Source: Lepidodermella squamata | Taxonomy: Eukaryota; Animalia; Gastrotricha | DNA: 64,000 nt | NCBI GenBank assembly: GCA_047495785.1 | Contig: JBLDXI010000002.1 | Span: forward strand, 1,054,001-1,118,000 | Reading direction: 5' to 3' | Part shown: piece by piece, positions 1 through 28,528 of the stretch | Numbering within the stretch: position 1 is the first letter of the stretch | How the letters are laid out: every line of letters starts with the position of its first letter | Position numbers and translations under genes: made by a program | The notes under the pieces: model-generated | Database searches by the model: none | Told to the model about the DNA's origin: nothing | What the model saw: the letters and a program-made list of their open reading frames with translations, nothing else

Positions 1-798
1 TACAAAAGGACGTGAATCGCCGTATAGCCTTGACGTTGTGCTCACCTTGATATTGTCATCATACGCAAAAACACGTAATAATGAGCAGCTTTTATGAAAA
101 CTTACTATGGTCACTATAAATATATCTAATATAATTCGTCATTAGTCATATTATATTATTAATCATATGCACGTTTTTTAGCCTCTTCATTCTTTGTTGT
201 AAATTCCCCCAGGCCTTGTGAAAAAGAGCAGCTAGAAGATCGGCGTCTTCTATGGAGAATAAAAATAAAGCGGAAAATTCAATGAAAACTGGTTCTCACA
301 ATATAATGAATCTTCGACAAAATTATTCCTGTTCTTCCTCTAAGTCGCCTCCAATATATCATAGATCTTAAAATCATAAATCTCAAATGTCTCGTTCATA
401 GAATTAGTAAGCCTTGGGCGAAAAAGGCGAATGCCATTTCTCCCGGTAAGGTTCAAAAGTCCTTCAAAAGTCAAAATGAAGCTGTGGTATTAATGAAAAA
501 GCAAGAAAAACATTTTTGGTAAGGTTTCCTTGAGGTGGTCATCAAATTCCCGAGCTTCGTCTGGCGTCGCTTCATTCGGGAAGTGGCCGAAAGTGCAAAT
601 CAAGTGAGCCCTGTCTCCAATTATTGTCCTTTGATTCAAACTGAGCGTATTGTTCGCAAGAGCTAGGAGCGTTTCATATTGTTTGAAACAGTTAGTACTT
701 CGTCATAATATTTAAGAATGCCACAATTCGAGCAAAATTTGTATAATTTCCAAAACTCTGCTCATCTAGGCAAGGATAGCACAAGGCTTTTAATTTCC
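1..798. repeat. Spacer of tandem unit 1 (dynamin upstream region)
   Basis: Position 1 aligns with 15210 and 26564 at near identity; alignment resumes at 4048 after the MULE insertion. Confidence 0.95.
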
Positions 799-3700
799 GA
801 TTTATGTCCGATTCCCCGAAATAACTTCCCCGAAAACTTGTTGCCCGAAAAGTGCGTCGCCGAAATAATTTTCCCGAAATAACTTCCCCGAAACGATTAG
901 TCGCTGTAGTAGCGACGAGAAAGACGCTTGTTAGGCTCAAGGAATTTCCCCGAAAACACACACATGCATAAACTGCAAGAAGATGAATAAACAAATATTA
1001 GTAGGTATCTAAAATTAATACACAGCTATACAGGTGGTTTCCCCGAAAACACGCGGACGCACACAACCACTTCCGCATGAGCTGTTGGCATAAACAAAGA
1101 GAATCGACATGCATTGACATAAAAAGACGCCCGTCCGAAGGAGGTTAATCCTCTTAGGTCTTAGGCTGGACGCACTGATTAAAACCGGAAAGAACACGGG
1201 TGCTATATGAAACATGTATTATCACAGCTGCATAGAAAACGCGCGTAAATCAACATCAATGATTGGAGTGCAATTTGACCAGCATTTGCTTTAATAAACT
1301 CTGGAACTTTCAAACTGTAATCAGTAAAATATGCTGACGGCTATAAGATTTCTCCCATTGCAGTCACTTTATATTTATATTTTTTTATTTATTCCAATGT
1401 AAGCTTGGTCCATGATCTGGCTGAACTTCATTTGCTGCTGTTTTCAATTAAATTTCAAATTTCAAATTCATTAAATATTGCGGAATTAAGATGTTAATGT
1501 TTGAATTAGATTCTGACCAGCTACAATAAAAGTCGCTTATGTTATGTCTAAAACAACAAGATCGAAGAGAGTGTCACCCCTGATCAGCCTAACTATGATT
1601 AAAAAGGGGCGCGGAAGACCGAGGAAGACTCAGCCTCAGCCTCAGCCGAATCCTGTCACGCCTCGCTTACCTGGTAATTTAAAAATTCTCGAACTCCTGA
1701 AATGCATTCATGAATTTGTTTGTGAAAGCGCCATCTCAAACCTCAACTCAGGTAAAGCCGCTGAAGGCTAAGAAGCGTGTCGCTCCGGTGACTGTTGACA
1801 GCCTAGTCTCTCTGATTTCGCCCATCGCAGTAGATACTCGACTCGACTCGCCGGACGTCTTGGACTCGCCCCCATCTCTCGAACCGCAATCGCCTCCTCG
1901 GTCGCCGTTGGCTGTCGAAAACAGCATGCCGTCAGGCTCCCCGGATTCACCCCCGCCGGAAAGACCGCCGCTGGGAGCCCCGGAAGCCGATTATCTCCGC
2001 TACGTCGAGGCATTCGAAGAGCACCACCGGCGCAAAGCGAACAAATTTCGTGATCGCAACGCTATTCAGCCTTTCGAGAAAAAAGCGATGCGCAGGTACA
2101 AAGCTGATCTCTCCGCAAATTCAGCTCAACGCGGCTGTACTTTTGAAGACGTTAGTCAACTTTCGATTCAAGCCGAGTCAGAAGCTGTTTTGCGGTACCG
2201 AAATGCACATGGTGGCTGTGTTGTCGTGTACAAGGGTCGTATTTACCTGGAAGATCGTCACGTGATCCGCGGCAAAGAATACATTTATTACCGATGTGCT
2301 AATCATCGTGAATGCAAATGTGCCGCCAAGCTACAACCGCAAGACGTTCCAGCGATGCCGTCGAATTACGAAGGCGGCGTGTGCAAATGGGATAATCGGC
2401 CGATGAAGGTCTATGGGCCTGTTGTCGAGGGTCATGAAGGCGATGATAGCGATGAGCGATTTCACGCGGCGGCTTGCATTTCAAATCACGAGCAAATCGA
2501 GGCTGACTTGGCGGAAGAAGTCCTGCGTAGAGTCAGGGAAATGCCTGATAAGGCACCAAATCAGCTCTATATTGAAGTTCGCAACGGTCTCTCGAGGGAG
2601 GTGCTGAAGCTATTCCGCTCATTCGAGTCGATGAAAAACCGGTTTTACTGCGCGAAGAAGGAGGAATATCCGCCCAACCCCGACGATCTAGATCATCTGC
2701 TGGAAATAGTGAAGTCTGCCGTGCAAAATGACCCTGATGCAATGGAAGCCAACAACTTGGATAGATTTTTGTACGACCACAAAGGGCGAAAATTCCTAAG
2801 AAAATTTTATCATGACGAATCTGGTAAGGCTTACATGATTTTTGCAACCGATGATGGACTGAAGAGAATGGCTCGAACGGCTCGGTGGTTCTTCGACGGC
2901 ACTTTCAAAATGGCTGCGAAGCACTTCATGCAAATGTTCACAATCCACACGATTGAACATGGCGTTTCGGTACCGGCGGCTTACGTGCTAATGACGAATA
3001 AAGATTCTAAGTTATACGAGTCTATGTTCGAAACGTTTTTTTCGATGATAGAAAAGCTTGGCGAGCCCCTTGCCCTAGAAGAGGTGACATGTGACTACGA
3101 GTCGGGTCTCTTACCGGTTCTGCGAGAATTGCGAGGAAAAAACGGCCAGCGACTCCGCATCATCGGCTGCCATTTCCATTTCAGGTAAATTCTTAAATTT
3201 AATTTCTAAATATTTTGAATTTCAAATTTTTTGTTGAAATTTCTAAATTTTATTTTAATAATTTTAATTTTCAAATTTTAGTCTTGAAAATTTTCAAATT
3301 TATCTTTTTCTTTAAAGCCAAGCCATAATTCGAAAACTGGGTGATTTGGGCCTCCTTAAATATTGTCGAAAGCCGAGTCGGGTGGCAACTAACGTGACGC
3401 GGAGTTACGTCCGCCGCTTTCTAGCTCTAGCCTTTCTACCCGTTGAAGATGTTGAAGATGTGCCGAGCGCCATTCATTATCTCATCGAAAAAGCTCCCGC
3501 AATTCAAGCTATGAAGCAATTCTGCACGTATTTCAATTCAACGTGGGGCGAGAAAGGGCTCTTTCCTCCATGTGAGTGGAACGTTCACGACGAAGAAATA
3601 CGAACAAACAATGTCGTGGAAGGTCAGCACTATTATTTCTCGTTTTTCGCTGTAACTTTCGGGCGGCCAAAAATTAAAAAGAACAATAAAAAAGTATAAA

Positions 3701-4039
3701 ACCATCGATACGGCAATACATTTGCTAGAACAGTGGTATCTGTCGGAGAATCGACGGACAAGGCCTGGCGCCATTAGAACGTTCAGCCCGTCGCATAACT
3801 GTTCTCATCGAGTTTTTAGAGAGCATTAGCCTGCATCTCTCGGACATCAGCGCCGGATTGTGATATGAATATTTTGCTCCTTGAATACAAACTTGTTGTG
3901 AATAAAGCTCGCGTTTTTGTACAATTTCGGGGAAGCTTGTTTTCGGGGAAATATACATCATGCGCGCAGCAATTTCGGGGAAAATCTTTCGAGCAACTAT
4001 GTTTTCGGGGAAACTATTTCGGGGATTCGGGAACACACC
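799..4039 (+). mobile_element. Mutator-like (MULE) DNA transposon, 3.24 kb
   Basis: TSD TAATTTCC at 791-798 and 4040-4047; empty site ttttaatttccaac near 27345; imperfect TIRs built from repeated CCCCGAAA/TTTCGGGG motifs. Confidence 0.92.
1544..3699 (+). CDS. MULE transposase (AT-hook, FLYWCH-like zinc finger, DDE); C-terminus probably frameshifted
   Basis: Exons 1544-1673, 1729-3184, 3318-3699 with frame-preserving GT-AG introns; GRGRPRK, YYRC..C..H, WFFDGTF, VTCDYE, GCHFHFSQAI, RTNNVVEG; a typical tail (KYKTID...EFLESIS) continues in other frames after about 3690. Confidence 0.85.
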
Positions 4040-4205
4040 TAATTTCCAACTTCATTGCGAAAAAAGTCTGTGAAACATCTGCCCTCGATTTTACTGAATT
4101 TACTAGCGAAACTGGAAGCTGAAAATTGTAGAGATGTGTTGACTAAATGTTACAGATATGGCAACAAGAATGCGAAGGAAATTTTCTTCGACTTTAACAT
4201 TGGCA

Positions 4206-4258
4206 AACAGACAACAGACAACAACACAACAACAGACAACAACAACAACAACAACAAT
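4206..4258. repeat. CAA/ACA-rich microsatellite
   Basis: acaacagacaacaacacaacaacagacaacaacaac...; shorter in the paralogous site near 27525. Confidence 0.8.
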
Positions 4259-4282
4259 TAATGGTCAAACAATACAGTTAAT

Positions 4283-4873
4283 AGTTACTTCTCGATAGAT
4301 GTTGCATCACCAAGGCAGATTTCGAGTTGGCAACCAGTTTTATCAGCGTCGTATTTCACAAGGTCGCTTCATTGCCTTTCTCCAACGCCAACTACATCGC
4401 AATTTTACCCTCGCCATTCGCATTATTAACGCCAGAATTGTCAGTTTCCAGCAGCTTCAACACACCGAATTCACGTCCAGCCAGCACAGCTCGATGCAGG
4501 GCATTTTCGCCGCGGCTGTTTGCCGTGTAGATCGTCGCATTCATCTCAGCCAGGTACATCGTAATCAGCTCACTGCCGCTGTCAACGGCGTACATCAAGG
4601 CAGTGTTGCCGTCTTTATCGGCCACGTTAATGTCAGCGCCAGCTTCGATCAACTTGATGGCTATCTCGATGTTGTTCGACGCAACGGCGGCGATTAGGGG
4701 AGTAAAACCAGTTGCGGCGTCTTTCTGGTTTAGATCAACTTTTTGATTGATGAAATTCACAACAGCTTCCACATCACCTTCCTTCGCCGCTTGAATGATT
4801 GATTTCTAGGGGGAAATTGTAATAAACTTTATCAATTATTAAGTTTGTAACCTGTGAACAGCTCATCACCAGG
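4283..4873 (-). pseudogene. 5'-truncated ankyrin gene copy (unit 1)
   Basis: Near identical to about 27570-28168 but cut by the TIR at 4874; stop at 4392 and a small frameshifting deletion near 4364. Confidence 0.9.
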
Positions 4874-6370
4874 GGACCACTTTCGTGCGGTCCAAGGTTA
4901 ATGCATAATATACATATTTTCCACCTGTCATTATGGTTGCTTATTTTGAGATAAAATTTTTGGCGATGTTGAATATCATGGAAACCAGTCTTAACCATGG
5001 ACCGCAGCTAAAAAACGCATATTGGACCGCAATTTTCACAAAAATGCCATTTTAATGAAATTTGCGGTCCATTCACGTGCGGTCCATCAATTCCAGGTCG
5101 ACTACAATTCGGGGTCAATTGGACTGGGGAGGTTAATCACCCTGAAGGAGTTTCGACATGCAGTCAAATTCGCGGTCAAGAGCGCGAAGAAATGGCGAGT
5201 CGATTGAGAATCCTATGTCGCAGTGACGGAACCAGTATTGGTGTTCCAGTCCTCGAGCTGGTCTCCGCCGATCAACACACCTCTTCCATTACATCATGGC
5301 TGTTGTCGTGGAAGACGGCGCTGATGAATCGCTCTCAGGCAGCCAGATTGCCTCGAGCTCAAGTTACTGACGCTTGTTTTGCAGAGTTACAGGCCGGTTC
5401 GATGGCTTTCAACCGCCTTGATTTGCATCGCTACCTCTGCGCCGTTTACAAATTCATTGTCAATGACAAGATCTTCATACCGCCAGGCTACACGATGCTG
5501 TTTATATGTTTTTCACACTTGATGAAGGATTACGGCATCGCGTTGAAGAAGGCAATCCATGGCATGAAAAAAGACAACAAAGAGCTGAGCCTTCGCCATC
5601 TTGGTGTTCTTCAAAGCCCGCGAATTTTCTCCGATGCTGTGATTATTTTCCGTCTGATCATCCGTGTCCGCTGCAGCCTCCGTCTGAACAAAGTTGCCGT
5701 CGAAGCGAAGAAAGAGCTGGAATCGCGTAAATCAAAACAGAGACTTGATTGCGGAGATTTCTGGCATCGTCGAGAAGACTAGTACCGAACCGGAAGCAAC
5801 TTCTGAGCAGGAAGCAACTTCTGTCGACGACGACGAAAACACGCCTGTCGAATCGGTTTCCTTACAGTCGCTCGACACCTTTCGGCCGGTTTTTCCGCAG
5901 AGTCCGAAATGAAGAACAGTGCTTGCTGGAACGAGTAGACAATTAATCGGGTTTGAAAGATAACCCTGATTACAACCCAGCTGATGTCAACGTTCTCAAC
6001 AACAACCCTATCTTCATGTCAATGTACTGTTGTTGGGGGGGGGGGGGGGCAAGCTACATTTTCGCTACACTGCCTGACAACGCGACGGGTCGTGTTTCCA
6101 ATGCGCCGGTCGAAAGTTGGATGCGAGTGTACAAAGCAGATCTCAACATGAAGAAAACTTTCAGCACACCACCTGCCGTCATCCGACGCGTTAAGCCGGC
6201 TATTTTCGGCCGCATTCGTAAAGATTCGATGCCCAGATTCGTATCCAAATTGCAATGGACACGCGGTAAAAACACGTACTGCAAACTTCCGGAGCTGGCA
6301 AGATCCCGATGGATGGATCGGAAGTCCAATCGCAAGCCTCCGAAGCCTATTTTACTGTCATTACTTAATA

Positions 6371-7777
6371 ATGGCACAACGCTTATCTCAAAACCCAAAC
6401 AACCCACCCCAAAACAAGCCGAAAAATGCCCGTTTTATTATTTATAACATCGAACAGGAATACAAAAAATGTGACTGGTTGGATATTATTCCTAAACTAA
6501 CGTCTGTTTTCACCGGTGTCACTTTCCGAAACGGTAAGCACACTTCTAACCGTGACATATATTTCGAGGTTAGCGATGTCAAGGGCATAAACGTTGTCAC
6601 CTCTATGATTGGCAAATTCCCTAACAATATTTTCGGCCCGAATGCCAAATTAAGGTTTTCAAATGAACCTATTTCCGAGGAAACTCGAATGCGCATTGCG
6701 TCAGGACTTAGAACAGTAGTGGTTAAAAAAGTATGCCGTAACATCTCCGCTGATCGGCTAAAAGAAACTTTGAATAGCAAGCTACACCTGGATTGCGAAG
6801 AAGTTACTTGGATCTCTAAACCCATTGTGACCATAGGAAAAGTGAAGATTGTGCTAAGGACTGCAGATGACGCTAAAAAACTTCTTGAAAATCACCTGAA
6901 ACTTGATAATCAATTTTTTTATTGCGAAAAATTCCGTGTCGAACAACTGCCAATGCAATGTATAAAGTGCTGGGGCTTTAACCATCGACACGACAATTGT
7001 GAGGCGAAAGACGCTCTTTGCAAGAAATGCGGCTCGGATGAACATACCCACCTTGACTGCGTTTTAAAAGACCGAAACAACCCGAATAGCTACTGCGTAA
7101 ATTGCCACAGATTTGGTCACCCAGCATCCTTTGCCGGCTGCCCAGTCTACCAAGATGTTCTCAAGGCATTAAATAACCCGCCCATTTTCAAACCAGCGCC
7201 ACCGCCGCAACGACAAGCTTGGCAATACCAACCGGCCTTTTTTCCGCCACTACTTCAGCCACCACCAGCGAAACAGCTACCGCCTCAAGTACCTCAACAA
7301 TTGCAGACCAATCCGCAGCAGCTGAACGAGGCCAGTAACCATCTTGTCAAGGAACTAGTCTCCAAGGCTGTTAACGATTTAATAAAAAATCTCAACTCTA
7401 AAAGCCTATCGTCACTCACGAGTAACGATTTGGCAAAAGTCATGGACGATCTTCGCGACGAAGCCGCTGCTAGGCCAGACCTTGGACTTGACGATAAGCT
7501 CATTACTGAAGTGAAAACAGTTGTCGTTACTCTCAAAACTCTCACCGAACGCCTAACCGAAGCTGCGAAGGAGGAAGATAAGAAAACGAAAGCATCCAAA
7601 GGAACGAATCCCCCAGCCTCAGCGTCAGCGGCAAACAAACGCGGCCGTCCCAACACGAGTGCCGAAGACAGTGCTGAAATGAAACCGCCAGCAAAACAAT
7701 CAACATCTTCCCAAAGTCAACCTCCCAGTCAAATGCTGGCATCGGCAAATGACTCCTTTGTGTACACAGATCAGTAA
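6371..7777 (+). CDS. LINE ORF1, gag-like nucleic-acid chaperone
   Basis: 468 aa; three CCHC knuckles CIKCWGFNHRHDNC, CKKCGSDEHTHLDC, CVNCHRFGHPASFAGC. Confidence 0.9.
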   Translation: MAQRLSQNPNNPPQNKPKNARFIIYNIEQEYKKCDWLDIIPKLTSVFTGVTFRNGKHTSNRDIYFEVSDVKGINVVTSMIGKFPNNIFGPNAKLRFSNEPISEETRMRIASGLRTVVVKKVCRNISADRLKETLNSKLHLDCEEVTWISKPIVTIGKVKIVLRTADDAKKLLENHLKLDNQFFYCEKFRVEQLPMQCIKCWGFNHRHDNCEAKDALCKKCGSDEHTHLDCVLKDRNNPNSYCVNCHRFGHPASFAGCPVYQDVLKALNNPPIFKPAPPPQRQAWQYQPAFFPPLLQPPPAKQLPPQVPQQLQTNPQQLNEASNHLVKELVSKAVNDLIKNLNSKSLSSLTSNDLAKVMDDLRDEAAARPDLGLDDKLITEVKTVVVTLKTLTERLTEAAKEEDKKTKASKGTNPPASASAANKRGRPNTSAEDSAEMKPPAKQSTSSQSQPPSQMLASANDSFVYTDQ

Positions 7778-7866
7778 AAAGTCAACTTAAAAAATTTGTT
7801 CTACTAAGCCCTAAACTTTCTACTTTCTACTTTTTTCTACTCTTCTATCGTACTTAATTATATATT

Positions 7867-10576
7867 ATGAGTATGATCACAGCAAAAATACTTTTGTGTA
7901 ATTTTAACAGTATAATGAAGCGCAAGAATGAGATCTCGTCGGTTATGAACCGCAGACAGGTAGATGTTGCGTGCTTCAACGAACTGAAAATTAAGAAGGG
8001 TGACACTTATTTCATCCCAAATTACAGAACTCTGGCTCTTGAGCGCACCAGCCACGGAGGAGGCGTCGGTGTAAACCCAGCAACGCATCTAACCGTCGAA
8101 AATTTCGGAAAAAATACTATAGATCGCGTAGAGATAGCTTTTGTCGATATCAGGCTCGGCGACCGTATAATTCGAATCGCGACTGCCTACTGCCCCGCGA
8201 CTGCTGTAAGAGTCGAAACTCTAATGGGACCAAACTGTTACCGCTGCTGCTAAACAATAATCTCGTTATGTTAAGTAAAGGTCAAGTTACTCATCGCTCC
8301 CCGATAGGAGAAGATGATCAGCTGGACGTATTCATATGTTCCAGGGAATTGAAAGACTATTTCTCGACGCCCTACGTCTTGCCGTCTGTTGGTACTGAAC
8401 ACTTACCAGTGGTTATAGAGTACTCAGCCTTATCTTTAACGGGAAAAAGACAGAATTTCTACCCAGAATATCGATATAACTATCGCAACGTAAACTGGAC
8501 GATATTCAAGAGCGGTATGGACGAGATGTGTGAACGCATTTTGTCAAACAAACCGATAAAATTTGAAGATCAGCCCTCCATGGATATGTTTTACAAAGGT
8601 ATCGAAGACATATTTTGTACAACAAGGGACAAGCACATAGCTAGAATACCCGCGGGAAAACTAAAAATTTGTCGAACGACCAAACCGATACTTATTGCCA
8701 CGAAAAATCGAAATAGGCTTCAGCGACTAGCTAAAAAGTATAATTCTCCGTCTCTGAAGAGGGCGTATTACAAATCCCGCGACCAAGTGACCGAAATGTG
8801 GACAAAAGAGACAAACCGGTGGGTATACAAAAAACAAATAAGCGCGCATGGTCACTTCGGAACGGCCCCGCAAATGTTCTGGAGAGCTATGAATTCGGCC
8901 ATGAAAAGAAATGCGTCTACAACTCCTCACGTCATGAAAGACCTGCTGGTCGACGGGCGCTCAATAACCTCTGATGCAGGAAAAGTTGAGGTGATGGGGG
9001 AATTCCTCGAAAATACATTTTCTGAGTGCAATAACTTACAACTAACCGCAGAAGACCGGCTATACCAGGCAGACGCAAAAGCCGCCGCCAGCTTACCTTG
9101 CTTCGAACCTGGAGTCATAAATGAAGAAGCTAGAAGTGTTTTAAATACGGATATGATAAGAAACCACATTCGAGACCTTAAAATGAAAGCCCCAGGCCAC
9201 GACAATGTTCATAACACTTTGCTTAAACAAGCCTCCGACAAAATGATTCAACTTTTGCTCTTTTTATACACAAGCATTTTGATATTCGGTTTTGTACCGT
9301 CAGCTTGGAAAATAGCTGTTGTTATTTTATTACCTAAGCCAGGCAAAGACCATCAATCACCGAAAGGCCACAGGCCCATTTCTCTCCTGCCAACTATAGG
9401 CAAACTATTCGACAAAATCTTGAACCGAATTTTAATGACAACTCTAGAAAAAAACTCCTGGTTTGCCAATTGGCAGTGCGGCTTCCGTTTTTTAAGGGGC
9501 TGCTCAGACCATTTATTCAGGTTAGCTCAAGCTGGAAAAGCAGCCATGCAGCAAGGGAAGGACGTAACCGCCTGTTTTTTAGACGTACAAGCTGCTTTCG
9601 ACAAGGTTCCGCACTTCATTTTACTACTTATAATATCTAATCTACCTATTCCAAATTATCTCAAACGTTACCTCGCCAGCAATCTCAAAGAGCGAAAATT
9701 CATGGTAAGAATTGGTTCTGCGCTAGGTAACGCAAGGCCTATCAGAGCTGGGGTCCCGCAAGGGGCGCCCAGTAGTCCATCTCTTTTTATTATTTTTACC
9801 AATAGTCTTTTTGATAATATTAACCAGCCACTTGTTGAACGCGGAGGGCTGGCTGACGACATTTTACTTTTTACAACGTCCGAACGATCCTCATTTGCTA
9901 AACGACAGGTAAAAGAGAGACTTGAATCCACACTTGACCTTGTGCTCAAATGGTATAACCGACATATGCTTAAACTGAATTCGGATAAAACGCAGGTGAT
10001 CCGCTTCTCTCTAGCGAAAGAGGATAACAGAACGAAACTCGTCTTTGATGGCAATACCCTTCCCTGGCTTACGGAAGTTACCTATCTCGGCGTTATCTTT
10101 GATAAAAAACTCAATTTTAACTCTCATGTCTTAAAGATACAGGACAAAGTCACCTCGCGAATTTCAAGCTTGCGTCGCCTGTGTGGTCCATCAGTTCGAA
10201 TGCCTCCAAACCAGCTCTAACTGTGTTCAAAGCCTACGTCCGCTCTGCCGTGGAGTCCGGCTGCGAAGCCTTTCTCTCAATGAAAGACGACAACATGATA
10301 ACCCTTCAAACCATTCAAAACACGGCCCTGAAGATTTGCCCCGGTAAACCGCGATGGTACGGCACGAAGCAGATTCATCTCGAAGCAGGTGTTCCAATGC
10401 TGAAAGACCAATTAGCTGCAAGAACAGCGAAAGCGATTGCCCGAGCTATAAGAGTTGGCACCGAATGTGGCTTAGAAACTGTCGAGGTCTTACAAAAACC
10501 TCCTGTTACACCCTCACGCCCATCTGTTAAAGCACCACTTGACGTAATTCGAGATTTCATTGTAGACATTGTTTGA
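7867..10576 (+). pseudogene. LINE ORF2 (APE endonuclease + reverse transcriptase), frameshifted
   Basis: ACFNE, GGGV, TEHLPV (APE); KAPGHD, RPISLL, FLDVQAAFDKV, GVPQG, LADD, YLGVIFD (RT); split across three ORFs with breaks near 8225 and 10210. Confidence 0.9.
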
Positions 10577-10819
10577 GAATGCGTGTATATGTTGTAAAAA
10601 GCTTATTGCAAATGATATACACTAAGATATATTTTGATTTTGATTACAACTAATCTATTTATTATTATTTGTCTTATGGCATCGTACGACTTGAAGTTGA
10701 ACCTGTGAACTGTTAAACTACATCGAATTTTATTTCCTACGAGTACGGAAATTTGAATTCTCCGATTTTTACTACTACCTCATATTACAACTGAAAAACC
10801 TGCGAAAAAAAAAATGAAA

Positions 10820-10979
10820 TTTTCTCTCTCGGACATGGCCCCCCGGAGCGTGAGCGCGGCTCTGATGGCCCGTAGAGGCTCTCGTTGTCAGCCGGTGGGC
10901 TAGCGCGAGCCTTGTTTTGTCGGGCCTCCTTAGCTATGCGCTCAGTTGTCTCCGGGGATCCCATTTCCCAGAGAGAAAA
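10820..10979 (+). other. Long imperfect RNA hairpin in LINE 3'UTR
   Basis: Nested complementary blocks TTTTCTCTCT/AGAGAGAAAA, ATGG/CCAT, CCCCGGAG/CTCCGGGG, TGAGCGC/GCGCTCA, GGCCCG/CGGGCC, AGGCTC/GAGCCT, AGCC-ggtg-GGCT. Confidence 0.85.
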
Positions 10980-12414: not shown

Positions 12415-12798
12415 ACTTGGACTAGCAACTAACTATACTAAATGACTCAAAAAACACTTAAAACTAAAAACTAACCGCGGAAACCAATAAAGACAGCCTC
12501 TAGGTCGCCCTCGTAACATCGAAATCTCGTTATGCCATGATAATAGCCCGGAATTGATGGACCGCACGTGAATGGACCGCAAATTTCATTAAAATGGCAT
12601 TTTTGTGAAAATTGCGGTCCAATATGCGTTTTTTAGCTGCGGTCCATGGTTAAGACTGGTTTCCATGATATTCAACATCGCCAAAAATTTTATCTCAAAA
12701 TAAGCAACCATAATGACAGGTGGAAAATATGTATATTATGCATTAACCTTGGACCGCACGAAAGTGGTCCGCTAACTTCACGCGGGTTTAGGAAGTTT

Positions 12799-16526: not shown

Positions 16527-16537
16527 AAGAGCTAAAT

Positions 16538-16868
16538 TCTCAGCCAGGTACATCGTAATCAGCTCACTGCCGCTGTCAACGGCGTACATCAAGGCAGTGT
16601 TGCCGTCTTTATCGGCCACGTTAATGTCGGCGCCAGCTTCGATCAACTTGATGGCTATCTCGATGTTGTTCGACGCAACGGCGGCGATTAGGGGAGTAAA
16701 ACCAGTTGCGGCGTCTTTCTGGTTTAGATCAACTTTTTAATTGATGAAATTCACAACAGCTTCCACATCACCTTCTTTCGCCGCTTGAATGATTGATTTC
16801 TAGGGGGAAAATTGTAATAAACTTTATCAATTATTAAGTTTGTAACCTGTGAACAGCTCATCACCAGG
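16538..16868 (-). pseudogene. Internal fragment of ankyrin gene (unit 2)
   Basis: Matches about 27838-28168; premature stop near 16738; ends at the TIR. Confidence 0.88.
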
Positions 16869-18450
16869 GGACCACTTTCGCGCGGTCCAAGGTTAATGCA
16901 AAAGCATAATATACATATTTTCCACCTGTCATTATGGTTGCTTATTTTGAGATAAAAGTTTTGGCGATGTTGAATATCATGGAAACCAGTCTTAACCATG
17001 GACCGCAGCTAAAAAACGCATATTGGACCGCAATTTTCACAAAAATGCCATTTTTATGAAATTTGCGGTCCATTCACGTGCGGTCCATCAATTCCGGGCT
17101 ATCATCGTTAATAAACAACTCGAACCGTTGCCAAAAAGAGTCTTGTGCTTAGCACGAGCTCTCTGATGACGTGTCAAGAATACCGTATGACGTAACAGCG
17201 GTGTTTATCTGGAAAACACATTCGTCGCACGTGGAAACTCGCTTTCGCGTGTTTGATGCGAATGTTGATGCGAATGTTCGGTCGTCAACTTTTCATTCAG
17301 TTTAATTTGTTTTCATGAATTTCAACGAAAAATTGATAACTCAAGTTCTCGAGGGTCGTCTCATACCCCGGGGGCAGGGCTGGAGGCGCGTCAACAGCAT
17401 CTTCGGTCAGGCCATAACTCGAAGTTATGGAATGGATGCCAACACGGAGCGCGCTCAGCATGACCTGTATAACTGGGCCAACGCCAATGCTGCCCACTTG
17501 ATAGAGCAGCCTTTGTCAACGACTCCGAGTTCCACTGGCTCTGGCAAGCGAAGGCGACGTCGCAAGAAGAGCAAGAAGGCCCAGAGCAGCCTGACTTTCT
17601 TCCTGTTGAAGACGGAATTGGATCGCTTCGGACCACGCATGCGGGTAGCATATTTAACGTAGTAATTATTGTGCATATTTAAAACGATATCTCTAGGGGC
17701 AAGCTAGGAAACGCCTGAAGCTTGACCCTGGTTGGGTTAAGGTGGTACGTGATGCATTCCACACGGTGGATCACCGATGCAATTGGGCGAAAGTCTCACA
17801 TCAAATCAACACCACAGGAACCTTGTCCATCACCACGAACTGTCCATTCGACAACTGTCGCAAGTTTTCACTGACGTGAGTAATTCGACTTTTCAAGCTA
17901 CTAATTGTTTAGTAAAAATTGTTTCTCATAGGTGCGAGATGGCAAAGGTTGACAACCAAGGTCGACTACAATTCGGGGTCAATTGGACTGGGGAGGTTAA
18001 TCACCCTGAAGGAGTTTCGACATGCAGTCAAATTCGCGGTCAAGAGCGCGAAGAAATGGCGAGTCGATTGAGAATCCTATGTCGCAGTGACGGAACCAGT
18101 ATTGGTGTTCCAGTCCTCGAGCTGGTCTCCGCCGATCAACACACCTCTTCCATTACATCATGGCTGTTGTCGTGGAAGACGGCGCTGATGAATCGCTCTC
18201 AGACAGCCAGATTGCCTCGAGCTCAAGTTACCGACGCTTGTTTTGCAGAGTTACAGGCCGGTTCGATGGCTTTCAACCGCCTTGGTTTGCATCGCTACCT
18301 CTGCGCCGTTTACAAATTCATTGTCAATGACAAGATCTTCATACCGCCAGGCTACACGATGCTGTTTATATGTTTTTCACACTTGATGAAGGATTACGGC
18401 ATCGCGTTGAAGAAGGCAATCCATGGCATGAAAAAAGACGACAAAGAGCT

Positions 18451-19890
18451 TTAAATGATCGCCACGCTGTTCACGCGCGTCATAGGACAAACGCGGCTGA
18501 TAATCACGATCGCGCGACGGAGTACGGCGCATGCCGCGCTGATGATAGGGCGAGTGACTAGAACGGTAGTCATCGCGAGAACGACACTGATCGGCATAAT
18601 GACCAGGGCGGTGGCATTTATCGCAAACCGGGGTGCGAGGACGGCGATCGTCCCGCTGTTGTAGCAAATCGCGCATCTTGGAACGGCACTCGGCCTCGAC
18701 ATGGCCGGGCTTCGAGCAATAATAGCAGGACGGGCGCGAACTACCACGCGAGCGCGACCGGGGCCGGCGGCACATACAGAGGCGTACCTAACGAAGTCGC
18801 CGTCACGTGGGTGACCGGCGGCGGCGCGGCGCCAGGCAGGCCAATGGGAAAACCGGCATGGTTAAGGCCGAATGACGGCTGAGCATAAGGCTGGGGATAC
18901 GAGGGAGTGTAAGAGACATGGCCGAATCCGGCTGGAAGCAGGGCCTGGGCGCCGGCAGGGCCGACGCGGATCGAGGTATCCGCGACCTCGGCGAGGCGCA
19001 ATAACTCCTCGCACGTTTGAGGTACGCCAAGCATAGCCATACGCCCACGAATAGCAGGCAAAATGCCGAAATAGACCCGATTAACAAGGTCCTTGCTAGT
19101 GTTTTCGGGTTCGCCACGCCCGGAATCAATCCACAAACGGCGAATAACGTCATAATACTGGCGAACGGTCTCGCCAGGGTATTGAGGGCGAGAATAAAAC
19201 TGCATTGAGGCTAACACGGTGTCCGGCGCAAGGCCAGACGCGGCGAGAAGCGCCTTCCCAGACCAAAACCAAAACCAGAATAGTCAATAGTCGCCCACAC
19301 ACGCTCAAGTTTGTTCGACAGAAACAAGGGCAGCATGTGGAGGACATGTTGTAACGGGTGTAAGTGATTATCAGTGTCGCAAATGTAAGGCGCGACTTTA
19401 GCAAAACGACCCCAGGACGAAACGAACTCGTCGTAGGAATCGCCAGAAATCTGGCCGACACGCACGAGCGCCAGCTCGATGGGCATGGCGAAGGCGGCGG
19501 CCGCAGTAGTAGGCGCCGGCGGCGCGGGACGGCCAGGCGCAGCGCTCGTGGCCACGCCAAAACCGGGAACACCACCAGACAGAGCAGACCCAGCAGGGCC
19601 GGAGGAGCCGGATGCCATTAGACCGTAAAAAACGAGAAAATGAGTGTGATGTGGCGGTAAAAGCAACGAAAAACCACTTCTGACACCAAAATTAGTGTAA
19701 TATCCGGCACGGTACGGATACCACACGGGTTCGATATAAAGAGTAAATAACAGTCAGGCAGAAATGATCCAAAACTCCTCATTTTATTGTTATTGTGTTT
19801 CAGTATTTATACTGCGGCACGCAGGCCGCTTATTGGTTGGTATGCGGACCAATCGCGCTCGACTTGCGTGTCGCGCGTCCGCATAGCACA
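18451..19890 (-). mobile_element. Ty3/Gypsy LTR retrotransposon remnant (5' LTR, PBS, frameshifted gag; no pol)
   Basis: 195-bp LTR 19696-19890 (TGTG...TACA, with TATAAA and AATAAA); PBS TGGTGTCAGAAGTGG at 19674-19688 (tRNA-Leu-like); capsid-like QYPGETVRQYY; knuckles CYYCSKPGHVEAEC and CDKCHRPGHYADQC. Confidence 0.88.
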
Positions 19891-20018
19891 GAGCCTTCGC
19901 CATCTTGGTGTTCTTCAAAGCCCGCGAATTTTCTCCGATGCTGTGATTATTTTCCGTCTGATCATCCGTGTCCGCTGCAGCCTCCGTCTGAACAAAGTTG
20001 CCGTCGAAGCGAAGAAAG

Positions 20019-20801
20019 CTTGGGACTAATACTGTATGGACTCGACACTGCTAGCATCTCTCCATTAAAATCCTGCTGGACGCAAAAAATCGTCCGAAGA
20101 ATCGTGATCGTAAAGTCGTTCAAAAATCGCGAGAAAAAATCGCAAAATGACGTTTTATAAGAACCTTTTTTACGCATGCGCCCATTACGTTGGGAAGAAT
20201 CGGAGTCTCGTCCTGTTGGTACCGTATCACACCTTACCTTTATTTAGGATTGCATTTAATTTTACATACCCGAATTCTACATGAGAGGACCTTTGTAACG
20301 GTATAAATCATGACCTACTGGGTGCTGAATTTACTTAGCTAAATTGATGTTTCTAACGGAATGCGTAAAACTTTCTAAAAATAGAACCGAATTATTTGCG
20401 CTGATTTATTCAGAAAAAAATACGAGAGAATATTTATGACTCATTGAATAATTTTTTGCCATTTTTATATCCTAAAAAATGGCAATTTCTGTGTAAAATT
20501 CAAAGTAAAATCATAGCAAAGTCATAAAATTTTGAACTTGGCACTGTTGCAAAGATCGTGACTTGAGCTATCGATATTCATAAAAATTGAGTCTGTATCT
20601 ATCGGCATGGCTTGCCCATACGGTACTCTCGTGAAACTTGTCCTGCTTTTGGCTTTGTAACGGGCGGATGCGTAAAAATGGTGCCTTTAATGCGTAAAAA
20701 ACACATTTTTTCATGTGATTTTCTCGCATCGAAATTATTGATTTTTTTCCTGTCCAGCAGAAAAGTGGCTAGTGTCGAGTCCATACAGTATTAGTCCCAA
20801 G
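20019..20801. mobile_element. 783-bp non-autonomous TIR element (8-bp TSD; hAT/P-like)
   Basis: 31-bp perfect TIR CTTGGGACTAATACTGTATGGACTCGACACT; TSD GAAGAAAG at 20011-20018 and 20802-20809; empty site in copy 1 near 5707. Confidence 0.93.
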
Positions 20802-22981
20802 GAAGAAAGAGCTGGAATCGCGTTGGGATCGCGTAAATCAAAACAGAGACTTGATTGCGGAGATTTCTGGCATCGTCGAGAAGACTAGTACCGAACCGGA
20901 AGCAACTTCTGAGCAGGAAGCAACTTCTGTCGACGACGACGAAAACACGCCTGTCGAATCGGTTTCCTTACAGTCGCTCGACACCTTTCGGCCGGTTTTT
21001 CCGCAGAGTCCGAAATGAAGAACAGTGCTTGCTGGAACGAGTTGACAATTAATCGGGTTTGAAAGATAACCCTGATTACAACCCAGCTGTTGTCAACGTT
21101 CTCAACAACAACCCTATCTTCATGTCAATGTACTGTTGTTGGGGGGGGGGGGGAGGGGGGGGGGGGGGCAAGCTACATTTTCGCTACACTGCCTGACAAC
21201 GCGACGGGTCGTGTTTCCAATGCGCCGGTCGAAAGTTGGATGCGAGTGTACAAAGCAGATCTCAACATGAAGAAAACTTTCAGCACACCACCTGCCGTCA
21301 TCCGACGCGTTAAGCCGGCTATTTTCGGCCGCATTCGTAAAGATTCGATGCCCAGATTCGTATCCAAATTGCAATGGACACGCGGTAAAAACACGTACTG
21401 CAAACTTCCGGAGCTGGCAAGATCCCGATGGAAGGATCGGAAGTCCAATCGCAAGCCTCCGAAATATTGTCCAAGGCTATCACCTCGGACCAAATCTCGA
21501 CTTGACGGTGAGAATTCCTCTTCGTTAATTTTTCCCCTTCTTAATGTTGAAATATCACTTCAGAGGCGAAGCGAAACGCTGAGGTGAACCGCAAAACTGC
21601 AACACCTGTCGAGTCCGATTTGGCTAGCATTGATGCCATTTCCCCCTCCGCTCAGCTGAGAAATCAATCGCCTGATGATGAACTTCCGTTATCTGACCTT
21701 ATCAATAAGCCACGCAGAAGGCAGCAGTCAAAACGAGGTAAAGACATTTCTGTGGCAATATCTTTTCGCTCTGATGAAGGTTTCCTTTTCAAATGTAGTA
21801 GTGCAAAGTTCATCATCGGCAACGCCAACCACCGACTCATCTGTTTCCTTTCAATCGTCCAAACAGAGCAAGAAAAAGCGCCGGAAATCTAAGCCGAAGC
21901 CTCAAAGAGAAAACCGCGCAGAATCGAGAATGGGTTCGGCAACACCAGAACCGAGTTTGCCTGCCGTCATTCCCCTCGGTATGGTTCTTTTCCACCCGGT
22001 CAATCACGAGTGGCAGCTGTCAACAGCCAAGATGTTGGGCGGGCAGGTTACGGTTCAAATCAAGCCTGAGCTAGCAGCGATCTGCATTATGTCGCCGAGA
22101 AGCAGTCCTCCGCTGCGAACTGTTTCCATGCTCGGCGATGGCGCCTGCTTCTTCAGGATGCTGTCTTACTGGGTTTATGGTACTCAGGACCATCATTTGA
22201 TGGTAAGGATTTTAATTTGATTACACTTACTTTGTAATTTGAAATTGTATCTGATAGATAAGGAAGAAAATTTGCAAATTCATTGAGGAGAATGGAGACC
22301 TCTTGCCTACCTGCGCAATACCACAACAACGGGAGCAACTACGTCAAGGCTACGCGTATGCGCTTCAAGTCTACATTCGCCGAATTCGTCGAGATATATG
22401 CTGCAGCGCTATTCCTGAATACCACCATTTACGTATTCGGTAGGGAGCAAGAAAATTCGGTCGAATTCGAGTGGCGCCGGTTTGCTGCACAGGGCGGCAT
22501 GGAGAGCCAGCCAATGAACAACAACGAGCGCGCCATCTACTGCGTCATCAACAATGCGCACTTCGACGTTGTACTCTCAATCCGTAACGTGGACTAGACT
22601 TGGACTAGCAACTAACTATACTAAATGACTCAAAAAACACTTAAAACTAAAAACTAACCGCGGAAACCAATAAAGACAGCCTCTAGGTCGCCCTCGTAAC
22701 ATCGAAATCTCGTTATGCCATGATAATAGCCCGGAATTGATGGACCGCACGTGAATGGACCGCAAATTTCATTAAAATGGCATTTTTGTGAAAATTGCGG
22801 CCCAATATGCGTTTTTTAGCTGCGGTCCATGGTTAAGACTGGTTTCCATGATATTCAACATCGCCAAAAATTTTATCTCAAAATAAGCAACCATAATGAC
22901 AGGTGGAAAATATGTATATTATGCATTAACCTTGGACCGCACGAAAGTGGTCCGCTAACTTCACGCGGGTTTAGGAAGTTT

Positions 22982-25900
22982 TTAATAATCTCCTTCTTCG
23001 GGATCAGCTCGTGGCTTAGGAGACTTCTTCGCAGGTTTTGGTTTCACAACGGACTCTTCCTCAGGCTGTGGAACCATTTCCATCAGCTTCCGGCTAACTG
23101 TAGCTCGCGACACTGGCTTGAAGGATTGGTCATTCATTTTGAAAATCTTCTCGCGAGCCAGCGTGAATTTGGAGATGACGGATTCGAGCTCGAGACGTCG
23201 AGCAATGCTTGCCTCATCCTCCATGAATAGACGGTCCCTTTCATCCGCGTCACACAGTTTGAGGAGGCGGGGCTTCAACGTGTCACAAACTGCTTCGATC
23301 ATGTGCCGGGTTACAGATTTCACCATAGCTGAGACCATGGGATCACGAACTCGATCCATATACCGAACAGCAAGATTGCCTGGATTGGAAATTTCGTAAG
23401 GTTGTTGGAAAATGTTTTCAAAAAAACTTACGGTATGATGCGACCATCGCTGGGGTAATACGGCTAATGCTGTCCTTCATCAAAGAATTCTCCTCGAAAT
23501 CATCGCCAGCATCTTGAACAGTTTCGACCTCGTTTTCACTACTAGAGTCGTCAATATCACTTTTATCCTGGTCCTTGTCATCGCCTGCTTCACCAGCGAC
23601 GGGTCGGGGTTTTGTCAACGCTGCAGGTCGTGCTGGCTTTAAAAATGGATCTAGAGCTCGGCTTGCAGATGGGGATATATCTGCTTTGTTATCGATGACA
23701 TCGTCTTCCTTGCGCAATTCGTCAAGATTGATGTGCGCCTGTTGCACCTCTGCCAGTTCTTTCGTGGCCTTCAAAGCCTTGGCCTGCTCCTCGTCCAAAA
23801 TATCCCGAGTCATTTTCATAATCTCGCCAGACAGAACCGGCAGACGGTGCATGTTTTGCTCCAGTTCCTCGTGAAGATCGATGCATTGGCTAACTTCGTT
23901 CAGCATAGACTGGTGAACAGCCCGAACACACTCACGGCCGACTAATACGAAATTTTCCAGCATGAGTTGGACAATCCGTTTGCAGGCTTCGTCTTTGAAC
24001 GTTGCTTCGCCTACATCACCACTAGCGTTGGCGATGATTGTTTGAATCTGTTCTTCAGTCAACTCGAGGGCAAGTTGTCGAATCCTGGCTGGGAGGGCGA
24101 AATTGAAGAGCTCACGAATCGCCGTTGAAGCAGTGAATCTCTTCGCGACTTTCACTTGATTACCGCTAGTTCGAGCTGTTTTGCCTGTAATGGCGTATTG
24201 GTACGCCTCAGCGTAATCAAGGGTCACATCTACAGCTGAGTGAAGGTAGTCAGCAACATCACGAGTTTCGCCCAACTCTTCTCGCTCCGCGAAGGATTGG
24301 TCATTCATTTTGAAAATCTTCTCGCGAGCCAGCGTGAATTTGGAGATGACGGATTCGAGCTCGAGACGTCGAGCAATGCTTGCCTCATCCTCCATGAATA
24401 GACGGTCCCTTTTATCCGCGTCACACAGTTTGAGGAGGCGGGGCTTCAACGTGTCACAAACTGCTTCGATCATGTGCCGGGTTACAGATTTCACCATAGC
24501 TGAGACCATGGGATCACGAACTCGATCCATATACCGAACAGCAAGATTGCCTGGATTGGAAATTTCGTAAGGTTGTTGGAAAACGTTTTCAAAAAAACTT
24601 ACGGTATGATGCGACCATCGCTGGGGTAATACGGCTAATGCTGTCCTTCATCAAAGAATTCTCCTCGAAATCATCGCCAGCATCTTGAACAGTTTCGACC
24701 TCGTTTTCACTACTAGAGTCGTCAATATCACTTTTATCCTGGTCCTTGTCATCGCCTGCTTCACCAGCGACGGGTCGGGGTTTTGTCAACGCTGCAGGTC
24801 GTGTTGGCTTTAAAAATGGATTTAGAGCTCGGCTTGCAGATGGGGATATATCTGCTTTGTTATCGATGACATCGTCTTCCTTGCGCAATTCGTCAAGATT
24901 GATGTGCGCCTGTTGCACCTCTGCCAGTTCTTTCGTGGCCTTCAAAGCCTTGGCCTGCTCCTCGTCCAAAATATCCCGAGTCATTTTCATAATCTCGCCA
25001 GACAGAACCGGCAGACGGTGCATGTTTTGCTCCAGTTCCTCGTGAAGATCGATGCATTGGCTAACTTCGTTCAGCATAGACTGGTGAACAGCCCGAACAC
25101 ACTCACGGCCGACTAATACGAAATTTTCCAGCATGAGTTGGACAATCCGTTTGCAGGCTTCGTCTTTGAACGTTGCTTCGCCTACATCACCACTAGCGTT
25201 GGCGATGATTGTTTGAATCTGTTCTTCAGTCAACTCGAGGGCAAGTTGTCGAATCCTGGCTGGGAGGGCGTTATTGAAGAGCTCACGAATCGCCGTTGAA
25301 GCAGTGAATCTCTTCGCGACTTTCACTTGATTACCACTGGTTCGAGCTGTTTTGCCAGTTATCGCGTATTGGTAGGCCTCGGCGTAATCTAGGGTAACAT
25401 CTACAGCTGAGTGAAGGTAGTCTGCAACATCACGAGTTTCGCCCAACTCTTCTCGCTCCTCTCGGTAGGAAGACAGGCGTATATTTATTTCTTGGATGGT
25501 TTTCGGGGTTGCCTTAGCGATTTCCGTGCGCAGAATCTTCACCAGAGTTTCAGCAAGGACCTTAGATCCGTGTTTCTTGGCCAAAGCTGGGTTGTGACCA
25601 AGAGCTTTTTTCAGCTTAGTTTCCTCAGCAGACCTTGCTTTGTCGAGTGGTACTGCTTCGTCCAAGTCTTCCTGCGATCGATTGATCACCCCGACAATGC
25701 CACGTTTCGCAACCAAATTCTTCTCCTGCAGCATCTTTTCCAGAGTTTTCGGGTCGACCTTATCCAGGTGAGTCAGAACCATGAGAGTCCTTTCGCCGGT
25801 GGGGTCGACACTTCGAGCGATTTGAATGGCTTTATTGGCCTTGTAGTCATCATGGGCCGCATGGACTAGCACGATTATCGTCTCCGGGCTGCTGATATAC

Positions 25901-26448
25901 TTCTTCCACATCTTTTCGACGAAGCTCGACACATCGCGATGAGAAGCGTCGTCGAAAATCAGACCGGGCAGATCGACGAAGGCTAGCGGCACTGTGTTTC
26001 TGATGTGAAGCTCCATTGAGATTGGATTATCGGACAAGCCTCCCTTCGTTGCTGGCGCTAATTGGGCTGATATTTCCATGAGCCTTTCAGCAGTTTCAAC
26101 TGCTGGAACTTGCTCGGCCTGTTTAGAGGCGACCCCTCGCTTATCGACCACTGAATACTCGATTTTCGCCCAGTCTTGATCGCTGAATGGGCCTTTTTGC
26201 TTGCCGCGTTCGAAGATTTTGATTTCCAACGGACTTTTCGTAGAGGTTTCTCTTCCCTTGGGCAGAATTTCGAGGCCGATGAGAGTTTCGACGGTTGAAG
26301 ATTTGCCATGGCTCTGCAGACCAATGAAGACGAGTCGAGGTGTTTTGATTGCCTTGAAATCCTTCTGGAAATGGTCGTCGCCCAGCTCGTCCAATAGGGC
26401 TTGGGCTTCAGTGAAAGCACTCAAACTTGCGCTACTGAGTTGAAGCAT
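22982..26448 (-). CDS. Dynamin-superfamily GTPase with in-frame duplicated middle+GED region, 1120 aa
   Basis: Exons 26448-24603, 24550-23432, 23379-22982 total 3363 nt with no stop; 1171-bp internal duplication, junction KMNDQSF-A-EREELG near 24289. Confidence 0.85.
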
Positions 26449-27568
26449 TGTGGTGAATTATGTTGATATTTCGGCAGACTAAGAGCGTCGATGTTAAGCG
26501 ATGGTACATAGAACGGCCTTATATAGGCGCATCCTTATCCGAAATCGTGGTGGTGAAACATCTTACAAAAGGACGTTAATCGCCGTATAGCCTTGACGTT
26601 GTGCTCACCTTGATATTGTCATCATACGCAAAAACACGTAATAATGAGCAGCTTTTATGAAAACTTACTATGGTCACTATAAATATATCTAATATAATTC
26701 GTCATTAGTCATATTATATTATTAATCATATGCACGTTTTTTAGCCTCTTCATTCTTTGTTGTAAATTCCCCCAGGCCTTGTGAAAAAAGAGCAGCTGGA
26801 AGATCGGCGTCTTCTATGGAGAATGAAAATAAAGCGGAAAATTCAATGAAAACTGGCTCTCACAATATAATGAATCTTCGACAAAATTATTCCTGTTCTT
26901 CCTCAAAGTCACCTCCAATATATCATAGAGCTTAAAATCATAAATCTCAAATGTCTCGTTCACAGAATTAGTAAGCCTTGGGCGAAAAAGGCGAATGCCA
27001 ATTCTCCCGGTAAGGTTCATAAGTCCTTCAAAAGTCAAAATGAAGCTGTGGTATTAATGAAAAAGCAATAAAAGTTTTTTGGTAAGATTTCCTTGAGGTG
27101 GTCATCAAATTCCCGAGCTTCGTCGCTTCGTTCCGGAAGTGGCCGAAAGTGCAAATCAATTGAGCCCTGTCTCCAATTATTGTCCTTTGATTCAAACTTA
27201 GCGTATTGTTCGCAAGAGCTAGGAGCGTTTCATATTGTTTGATACAGTTAGTACTTCGTCATAATATTTAAGAATGCCACAATGCGAGCAAAATTTGTAT
27301 AATTTCCAAACCTCTGCTGATCTAGGCAAGGATAGCACAAGGCTTTTAATTTCCAACTTCATTGCGAAAAAAGTCTGTGAAACATCTGCCCTCGATTTTA
27401 CTGAATTTACTAGCGAAACTGGAAGCTGAAAATTGTAGAGAAGTGTGGACTAAATGTTACAGATATGGCAACAAGAATGCAAAGGAAATTTTCTTCGACT
27501 TTAATATTGGCAAATAGTTTGCAGACAACAATAACAAAAACAACAATTAATGGTCAAGCAATACAGTT

Positions 27569-28528
27569 TTACTTCTCGATAGATGTTGCTTCACCAAGGC
27601 AGATTTCGAGTTGGCAACCAGTTTTATCAGCGTCGTATTTCACAAGGTGGCCAATGATCGCTTCATTGCCTTTCTCCAACGCCAACTGCATCGCAGTTTT
27701 ACCATCGCCATTCGCATTATTAACGCCAGAATTGTCAGTTTCCAGCAGCTTCAACACACCGAATTCACGTCCAGCCAGCACAGCTCGATGCAGGGCATTT
27801 TCGCCGCGACTGTTGGCCGTGTAGATTGTCGCATTCATCTCGGCCAGGTACATCGTAATCAGCTCACTGCCGCTATCAACGGCGTACATCAAGGCAGTGT
27901 TGCCGTCTTTATCGGCCACGTTAATGTCGGCGCCAGCTTCGATCAACTTGATGGCTATCTCGATGTTGTTCGACGCAACGGCGGCGATTAGGGGAGTAAA
28001 ACCGTTTGCGGCGTCTTTCTGGTTTAGATCAACTTTTTGATTGATGAAATTCACAACAGCTTCCACATCACCTTCCTTCGCCGCTTGAATGATTGATTTC
28101 TACGAGGAAAATTGTAATAAACTTTATCAATTATTAAGTTTGTAACCTGTGAACAGCTCATCACCAGGGGAGGATCCCAAGATCCGTTGCTTCCGCAAAT
28201 GCTGACCGGGGATTTGTCGCCAAGCGATGGGCAGTAGATTTGCAGTGCGTAGCCTTCCGTCAGTGTTTTCATACGCGCTGGAATGAAAGGATCAGTTTTG
28301 GTTGATGTTCGCGATTTCAGCGTAAATTCGGCCGCTGGTGGCACTTGTGGGATTTTACACCGAACCGTAATTCTGTCGCTTTCGATCTTATCGGTAATAG
28401 TCTGATTGAATAATTCCGAGTTGAATTGATTGATACATGTTATAGGGAATTCTTACGTCTAGCAATTCGCTCTTCTTCGACTGGCACGAGGCTAAAGAGG
28501 CAAAAATGATGGCGAGCTTCAACAACAT
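27569..28528 (-). CDS. Secreted sushi/CCP-like + ankyrin-repeat protein (intact parent of the truncated copies; 3' end uncertain)
   Basis: Signal-like MLLKLAIIFASLASC; CKIP...IYC...ICGSNGSWDPPLVMSC; ankyrin repeats GFTPLIAA, GNTALMYA, GENALHRA, GKTAMQLA. Confidence 0.78.

Follow-up and report, generated by a model that had tools for sequence, protein, structure and literature searches.

Tandem duplications are a major source of new genes, and the origin of old ones can rarely be read from what is left. A transposon can take part in their formation: in the hybrid element insertion of P elements, attributed to Gray et al. and to Preston et al. in 1996, a single element reportedly gives rise to flank-element-flank duplications. 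The product is said to carry the element only in the middle, with an intact copy of each breakpoint outside, and both ends of the element are expected to be complete transposase joints. Here, we describe a tandem array of dynamin-like genes that carries a transposon at its internal joints, located in a 64,000-nucleotide window (the whole stretch of DNA that was analysed, G000:C2:1054001-1118000) of the genome of the gastrotrich Lepidodermella squamata. The window was analysed together with 40 kb upstream, and whole-genome searches covered the 121-Mb assembly of this animal. Window coordinates are used throughout, with negative numbers for positions left of window position 1.

Two other systems are close enough to serve as references. 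In maize, reversed-ends transposition of Ac/fAc makes tandem direct duplications (Zhang et al. 2013, PMC3744419), and the same paper cites the hybrid element insertion of P elements. Two-element routes leave an element at the outer edge or edges of the duplication and flank the first element with target-site duplications (PMC3744419). In the Paris sex-ratio duplication of Drosophila simulans, Hosim1 (hAT) elements lie at the joint and are discussed by the authors as a possible cause of the break; this duplication is 37 kb long and very young, has amplified element-plus-repeat modules at the joint and is explained by duplication-dependent strand annealing between repeats (PMC3276153). The array described here resembles the maize case in that a cut-and-paste transposon lies exactly at a tandem direct joint and the boundary is a complete transposon terminus. 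However, the maize model needs two elements, one starting each repeat, and target-site duplications around the first, whereas our array has no outer element, no target-site duplication and one truncated tip. With P-element hybrid insertion it shares the single-element flank-element-flank topology and the intact breakpoints outside, but the left tip of the element is 15-17 nt short, the element belongs to a different, probably Mutator-like family, the host is a non-model invertebrate, and further expansion has followed the event, which is old. Like the Paris duplication, it is a natural animal tandem duplication in which truncated genes flank a joint with a class II element; unlike it, the array has a single element per joint and no repeat pair for annealing.

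Self-comparison of the window and its 40 kb upstream gave the following order along the contig: unique sequence X, a first segment (seg0, -2427..4873), a first copy of the transposable element (TE1), a second segment (seg1, 12788..16868), a second element copy (TE2), a third segment (seg2, 22971..28171) and unique sequence Y (Table 1). After subtraction of later insertions, a segment measures ~4.05 kb and contains, on the minus strand, the final 14 nt of a cysteine-rich exon and, after a short intron, a terminal ankyrin-repeat exon, followed by a spacer of ~760 bp and a complete dynamin-like gene. The duplication breakpoint in the uninterrupted ankyrin gene lies at 28169-28171, inside its cysteine-rich exon. 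The original prediction, made from the window alone, had proposed a tandem array with a transposon at the joints, and the element does occupy every internal joint. It had also listed the spacer at three places (starting at 1, 15210 and 26564), all of which were recovered in the self-comparison: 1-798 is 95.5-96.2% identical to 15210-15855 and 26564-27354, with 100% identity among the three spacers over the initial 225 nt. Over longer stretches, 11286-14105 and 21453-24288 are 98.9% identical, and 12937-15855 and 24291-27220 are 98.4% identical. These repeats are genuine and well above chance level. Finally, a further dynamin start codon expected ~115 bp left of position 1 was found exactly at -115, where it opens a gene (-115 to -2416) with an open frame and the same intron. 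In our best explanation, which as a whole we regard as moderately probable, the locus is a true tandem segmental duplication whose unit comprises the dynamin-like gene, its upstream region, and the last exon and a bit more of the adjoining ankyrin gene.

Table 1. Features of the dynamin array and its joints, in window coordinates.
Feature	Position	Strand	Description
Spacer copy 0	1..798		Upstream region of dynamin copy 0
Mutator-like element (MULE) insertion, later and unrelated	799..4039	+	MULE and FLYWCH reading frame 1710-3188 (Pfam PF10551, PF04500); 8-bp target-site duplication TAATTTCC
Decayed ankyrin 3' fragment, copy 0	4040..4873	-	From comparison with the intact exon
TE1	4874..12787	+	Left end lacks 15-17 nt of the tip; right end complete, tip at 12785-12787
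Dynamin-like gene copy 1	12799..15094	-	Exon 1 13249-15094 (GTPase and middle domain); intron 13197-13248; exon 2 12799-13196 (GED and tail)
Spacer copy 1	15210..15855		From self-comparison
Replacement in unit 1	15856..16537		Repeat resembling a miniature inverted-repeat transposable element (MITE), with other sequence, replacing ~514-617 bp of the ankyrin fragment
Ankyrin fragment remnant, copy 1	16538..16868	-	Ends at the same joint as copy 0
TE2	16869..22970	+	Truncated left joint as in TE1; complete right tip 22968-22970; DDE-like reading frame 17777-18454
Dynamin-like gene copy 2	22982..26448	-	Internal 1171-bp tandem duplication
Spacer copy 2	26564..27354		From self-comparison
Uninterrupted ankyrin gene, 3' end	27569..28344	-	Terminal ankyrin exon 27569-28066, short intron, cysteine-rich exon (sushi/CCP-like by motif only)

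The joints themselves are the most informative part of the locus. With its ends placed as originally proposed, the element occurs twice between 224-nt inverted ends (4874-12770 and 16869-22953). The left flank is the same in TE1 and TE2 and ends in CATCACCAGG, of which an unbroken version is present at 28159-28168; the right flank is also shared, with 28 nt from the proposed end to the dynamin stop codons (12799-12801 and 22982-22984). We found no target-site duplication around TE1 or TE2, as had been reported before, and the flanks are identical chimeras without duplicated bases. The placement of the ends had to be revised. Five other genomic copies run outward past GGACCAC... with the same ~15 nt, GCGCGTGAAGTTAGC, probably followed by two nt more, before entering unrelated flanks. 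As these ~15 nt are common to five other copies, they are element sequence, and the true tip therefore lies 15-17 nt further out. Consequently, the stretches originally taken for host flank (GCTAACTTC... / GCTAACTT(C)) are the transposon's own tip. The inverted arms thus consist of 224 nt, 99% complementary, plus a tip of 15-17 nt, a length above the at least 100 nt required of Mutator-like elements. The identical chimeric flanks and the intact left flank near 28168 stood, and it was only the position of the element ends that moved outward, which reduces the distance between element and dynamin stop from 28 nt to 11-13 nt. The two termini are not alike at the joints. The right end carries the additional tip nucleotides and is complete, whereas the left end lacks the 15-17 nt present on the five other copies, which are right ends wherever the side can be told. 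At this left end, the element meets the ankyrin exon in a GGA common to both partners (3-bp microhomology). With the tip gone and microhomology present, the left joint is probably not an ordinary transposase joint.

We then considered the outer edges of the array. Neither the 40 kb left of the array nor the sequence right of 28171 contains a copy of the joint element. The outermost element expected upstream, its left flank repeating GCTAACTT(C), is absent within those 40 kb. The genome holds a fourth dynamin paralogue at C2:542.7-545.1 kb, ~510 kb upstream on the same contig, and 5 kb from it a 3' fragment of that paralogue (~400 bp, C2:547.8-548.2 kb, 547813-548215). The 3' flank of seg0 (~50 bp) matches both paralogues, at C2:542.7 kb and C2:547.8 kb, straight across the position that the element occupies in seg1 and seg2, so that the left outer site is empty; no excision footprint was found at this edge. 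The right outer site is also empty, the exon frame being open across 28171 and the sequence beyond being single-copy. No close paralogues of the ankyrin breakpoint exon were found that could act as an outgroup. The topology is therefore that of a single-element aberrant transposition, with one element at the joint and both breakpoints uninterrupted at the outer edges.

The dynamin-like genes, as predicted from sequence, consist of two exons separated by a 52-nt intron (GTAAGT...AG, phase 1). In copy 0, the ATG lies at -115 and the lowest base of the stop codon at -2416 (G000:C2:1051585-1053886). Exons were searched and compared one by one, and the ratios of nonsynonymous to synonymous divergence (dN/dS) were likewise obtained per exon. 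Exon 1 matched Dynamin_N (E 5e-25) and Dynamin_M (E 9e-32) in Pfam, and exon 2 matched GED at 27.7 bits, which is over the cut-off; the array genes thus show the order GTPase, middle, GED of the dynamin superfamily. Their closest relative of solved structure is DRP1/DNM1L (E 9e-39). The GTP-binding motifs G1 (GLQSHGKS) and G3 (DLPG) are present in all copies, and G4 reads THLD, the usual motif being TKLD. There are no stop codons or frameshifts in any copy. Copy 2 is peculiar in that 23120-24288 equals 24291-25459, a 1171-bp tandem duplication that includes the intron and keeps both frame and splice phase, so that the predicted protein reads middle-GED-middle-GED. The halves of this duplication differ in one tract, where one half is like copy 0 and the other like copy 1. 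The fourth paralogue is 91% identical to the array genes in exon-1 protein and 88.7% identical in DNA, and its homology with the array extends from ~23 bp upstream of the ATG to ~50-75 bp downstream of the stop. Altogether, the dynamin family of this genome comprises four genes plus fragments.

Comparison of the three segments revealed that the middle one is a hybrid. At sites where seg0 and seg2 differ, seg1 is like seg2 at 66 of 68 between 12918 and 14708, like seg0 at all seven between 14996 and 15148, and mosaic further right. Over 2973 aligned bases, TE1 and TE2 differ by 0.5%; in the 3' half of the dynamin gene, the divergence of seg0 from the other two segments is ~4%. The hybrid seg1 together with these two divergence values fits a seg-TE-seg ancestor in which an unequal crossover took place within the GTPase-coding region. 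The later expansion by unequal exchange put forward in the original prediction is thus plausible, because the middle copy is a hybrid; such a crossing-over between two segments, which the mosaic sequence suggests as the second step, would have given seg-TE-seg-TE-seg. Gene conversion among the copies, and with the fourth paralogue 510 kb away, would have followed. Synonymous differences are concentrated in dense tracts (codons 241-293 and 351-382), one tract of dynamin copy 0 is near-identical to the distant paralogue (3 differences per 150 nt versus ~15 per 150 elsewhere), and part of copy 2 is also almost identical to that paralogue in a conversion tract. From these patterns, and from the identity of the three spacers over their initial 225 nt, gene conversion is active among the copies, and the copy 0 tract suggests long-range conversion with the paralogue 510 kb off.

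In a third step, which the sequence shows directly, each unit received different elements by independent insertion, the ankyrin fragments and the transposase decayed, and purifying selection kept all the dynamin frames open. The MULE/FLYWCH insertion of seg0 has its empty site at 27347-27354 in seg2, and those 8 nt are duplicated at both of its ends. TE1 contains a reverse-transcriptase element resembling a long interspersed nuclear element at 6345-11285 and has lost 863 bp that TE2 retains; TE2 contains a nested repeat fragment at 18451-19890 and a MITE at 20019-20801. The MITE-like repeat at 15856-16136 measures ~280-300 bp, and its ~47-nt ends match dozens of genomic sites in both orientations. 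As these nested insertions are independent and have their own target duplications, the units are physically distinct. Compared with the intact exon, the ankyrin fragment of seg0 has accumulated 26 substitutions, one nonsense codon and a 10-bp frameshifting deletion, and in seg1 a replacement that includes a MITE has removed 514 bp of the fragment. In exon 1 of the dynamin genes, dS and dN were 0.113 and 0.0085 between copies 0 and 1, 0.099 and 0.0071 between copies 0 and 2, and 0.032 and 0.0056 between copies 1 and 2, corresponding to dN/dS values of 0.08, 0.07 and 0.18, respectively; exon 2 gave 0.28-0.49, at few sites. Purifying selection on the dynamin coding sequence of the copies is supported by these comparisons. 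The earlier observation that ankyrin fragments and transposase decayed while dynamin frames remained open was confirmed, and the exon 1 values of 0.07-0.18 add to it. The accompanying claim that dosage is what is retained goes beyond the data: each copy is under purifying selection, but this constraint could be due to dosage, to divergence of roles or to gene conversion from selected copies.

How did the first joint arise? Recombination between two insertions and reversed-end transposition had both been proposed. The textbook route, offered as an alternative in the original prediction, is unequal homologous recombination between separate insertions, one in the ankyrin gene and the other on the dynamin 3' side; with it we group the reversed-ends class of maize Ac/fAc. 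The direct orientation and near identity of the joint elements would agree with such a history. However, recombination between two insertions needs an element with normal joints at the outer edges, and the route predicts one or more outer elements with target-site duplications (PMC3744419), whereas the outer edges are empty and footprint-free and the left joint is truncated. Maize-type reversed-ends transposition, for its part, needs an outer element plus a target-site duplication that encloses the first element and has one of its copies beside the middle element, and neither was found. As both outer sites are empty, two-insertion recombination and the reversed-ends routes are therefore excluded, and we give this class of explanations hardly any credence. 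A hybrid-element or sister-chromatid aberrant transposition, which we consider unlikely, predicts the exact topology observed: the element at the joint, the outer sites empty and no shared target-site duplication. A single element first present in the ankyrin gene would have produced seg-TE-seg directly, the left end of one chromatid and the right end of the other inserting together behind the dynamin gene of the homologue, with both joints made by transposase. The complete right tip agrees with this, and such events are documented for P elements in work cited in PMC3744419 and in the reference list of PMC3439972. But the left tip lacks 15-17 nt found on all other copies, which requires a second, later deletion unless the native tip is shorter, and the GGA microhomology resembles end joining. 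Instead, the missing tip and the 3-bp microhomology favour a left joint made by end joining, and a single transposon-end break or aberrant transposition, joined unequally, is the best fit within an explanation that, taken whole, we hold to be reasonably probable. One transposon with inverted ends of ~240 nt, probably Mutator-like and probably present on one homologue only, would have lain 11-13 nt past the dynamin stop. Its left end would then have broken and lost 15-17 nt of the tip, and through the GGA microhomology it would have been joined to a chromatid or homologue that was itself broken within the ankyrin gene. The same product could have come from an aberrant transposition of the hybrid-element type, with the left tip nibbled later: seg-TE-seg, both outer edges free of transposon and the joint occupied by an element that has one end only and can no longer move.

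Several points weigh against this account of a single transposon-end event followed by unequal crossing-over. Both the sequence of events and the way in which the first joint was made are deduced from one end product. All other copies of the element are one-ended, and those whose side is recognisable keep the right end. The extra 15 nt might therefore be absent from the native left tip, in which case the left joint would be an ordinary product of transposase; we judge this unlikely, the arms being 99% identical. The right side of seg1 is mosaic, and a haplotype switch in the assembly of a two-copy locus would look alike. Because of gene conversion, divergence values are unusable as a clock, and low dN/dS could partly have been imported from selected copies through conversion. 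The haplotype switch can be put as an explanation of its own, in which only two copies are true (seg-TE-seg) and the third is an assembly artefact, two haplotypes having been chained through the near-identical GTPase/spacer region. In that case seg1 would be exactly the chimera expected, left like seg2 and right like seg0; the assembly holds no separate haplotig of the locus, and collinear arrays on two other contigs (C23 and C54, 94-98.5%) could be uncollapsed haplotypes. We nonetheless find an artefact quite improbable. Such a chimera also results from unequal crossover, several large nested insertions and eight amino-acid changes in exon 1 set the units apart, and the core finding, a transposon at the joint with both outer sites empty, is independent of the third copy.

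Regarding its class, the joint element is probably a low-copy Mutator-like DDE transposon. This assignment was made because of the long inverted ends, the D...D...C..H of the relatives of one reading frame and the placement of that frame by a protein language model. The frame, of 225 amino acids, clusters beside MULE by protein-language features (score 0.93), and an all-against-all protein search returned 23 weak or remote relatives that share the conserved D...D...C..H. Ten of these 23 were scanned and gave no transposase family match; one contains a Ulp1 protease and, at lower strength, a PHD-finger match, and another a PHD finger only. Neither did any of the eight reading frames of the joint element match Pfam, the 225-amino-acid frame having no match even at E = 10. 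A profile comparison between this frame and the window's own MULE was not significant. Its predicted fold (predicted local distance difference test, pLDDT, 63) gave weak RNase-H-like matches, with Z up to 4.3 and none significant by Foldseek or VIA-align. Thus, no alignment- or fold-based class test of the joint element reached significance, and its coding capacity is fragmentary. A whole-genome search with the 224-nt repeat returned only a handful of other copies. No complete second copy was found in the genome, the matches being one-ended or internal fragments on C48, C36, C7, C23, C3, C54 and C11, and no two-ended insertion of the family was found elsewhere in the genome from which a target-site duplication, 8-11 bp in Mutator-like elements, could be read.

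Contig C23 also holds another repeated locus. An old tandem array of ankyrin genes at G000:C23:986000-1037000 contains at least eight units, 6-11 kb apart and 75-95% identical, and C54:101800-125700 is collinear with it at 94-98.5% identity; the two stretches could represent haplotypes left uncollapsed in the assembly or a large, recent duplication. Relatives of the joint element are present as end fragments in two adjacent units of the C23 array and in its near-copy on C54. Recurrence of relatives of the joint element at the joints of other tandem arrays is not supported, as the other six or more C23 units carry no end fragments.

Other features of the window lie to the right of the array. 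On the plus strand, a series of ankyrin-repeat reading frames that share one pattern (29631-32811) is arranged head-to-head with the minus-strand breakpoint ankyrin gene. A threonine-rich, galaxin-like reading frame occupies 34699-35733. Further right, about seven lipase-family genes lie in tandem on the minus strand (45381-55708), 1.25-1.83 kb apart and 62-74% identical, with a Pfam Lipase match for 53236-53994.

What distinguishes the dynamin array is that both uninterrupted breakpoints were kept beside the joints, which allows the two-insertion route to be excluded and a single transposon-end event to be inferred. The duplicated unit also provides an internal control for selection, since within one and the same unit the ankyrin fragment decays and the dynamin gene is conserved. 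The locus is a well-preserved natural example of a known gene-duplication route and leaves the knowledge of mechanisms unchanged; it can serve as a worked example and as an aid to annotating the dynamin family of this genome. A more far-reaching reading is tentative and, in our view, doubtful: in the germ line of an animal, one event at a Mutator-like element, either an aberrant transposition or a break at its end, may have created a new gene copy in one step; the disabled joint element would now supply the 3' end of the new dynamin genes, and selection would have retained the copies, for instance in the role of a fast-evolving, Mx-like defence family that gene conversion homogenises. If true, this germ-line, single-event reading would make the array a fully reconstructible natural case in an animal, with both empty sites preserved in cis.

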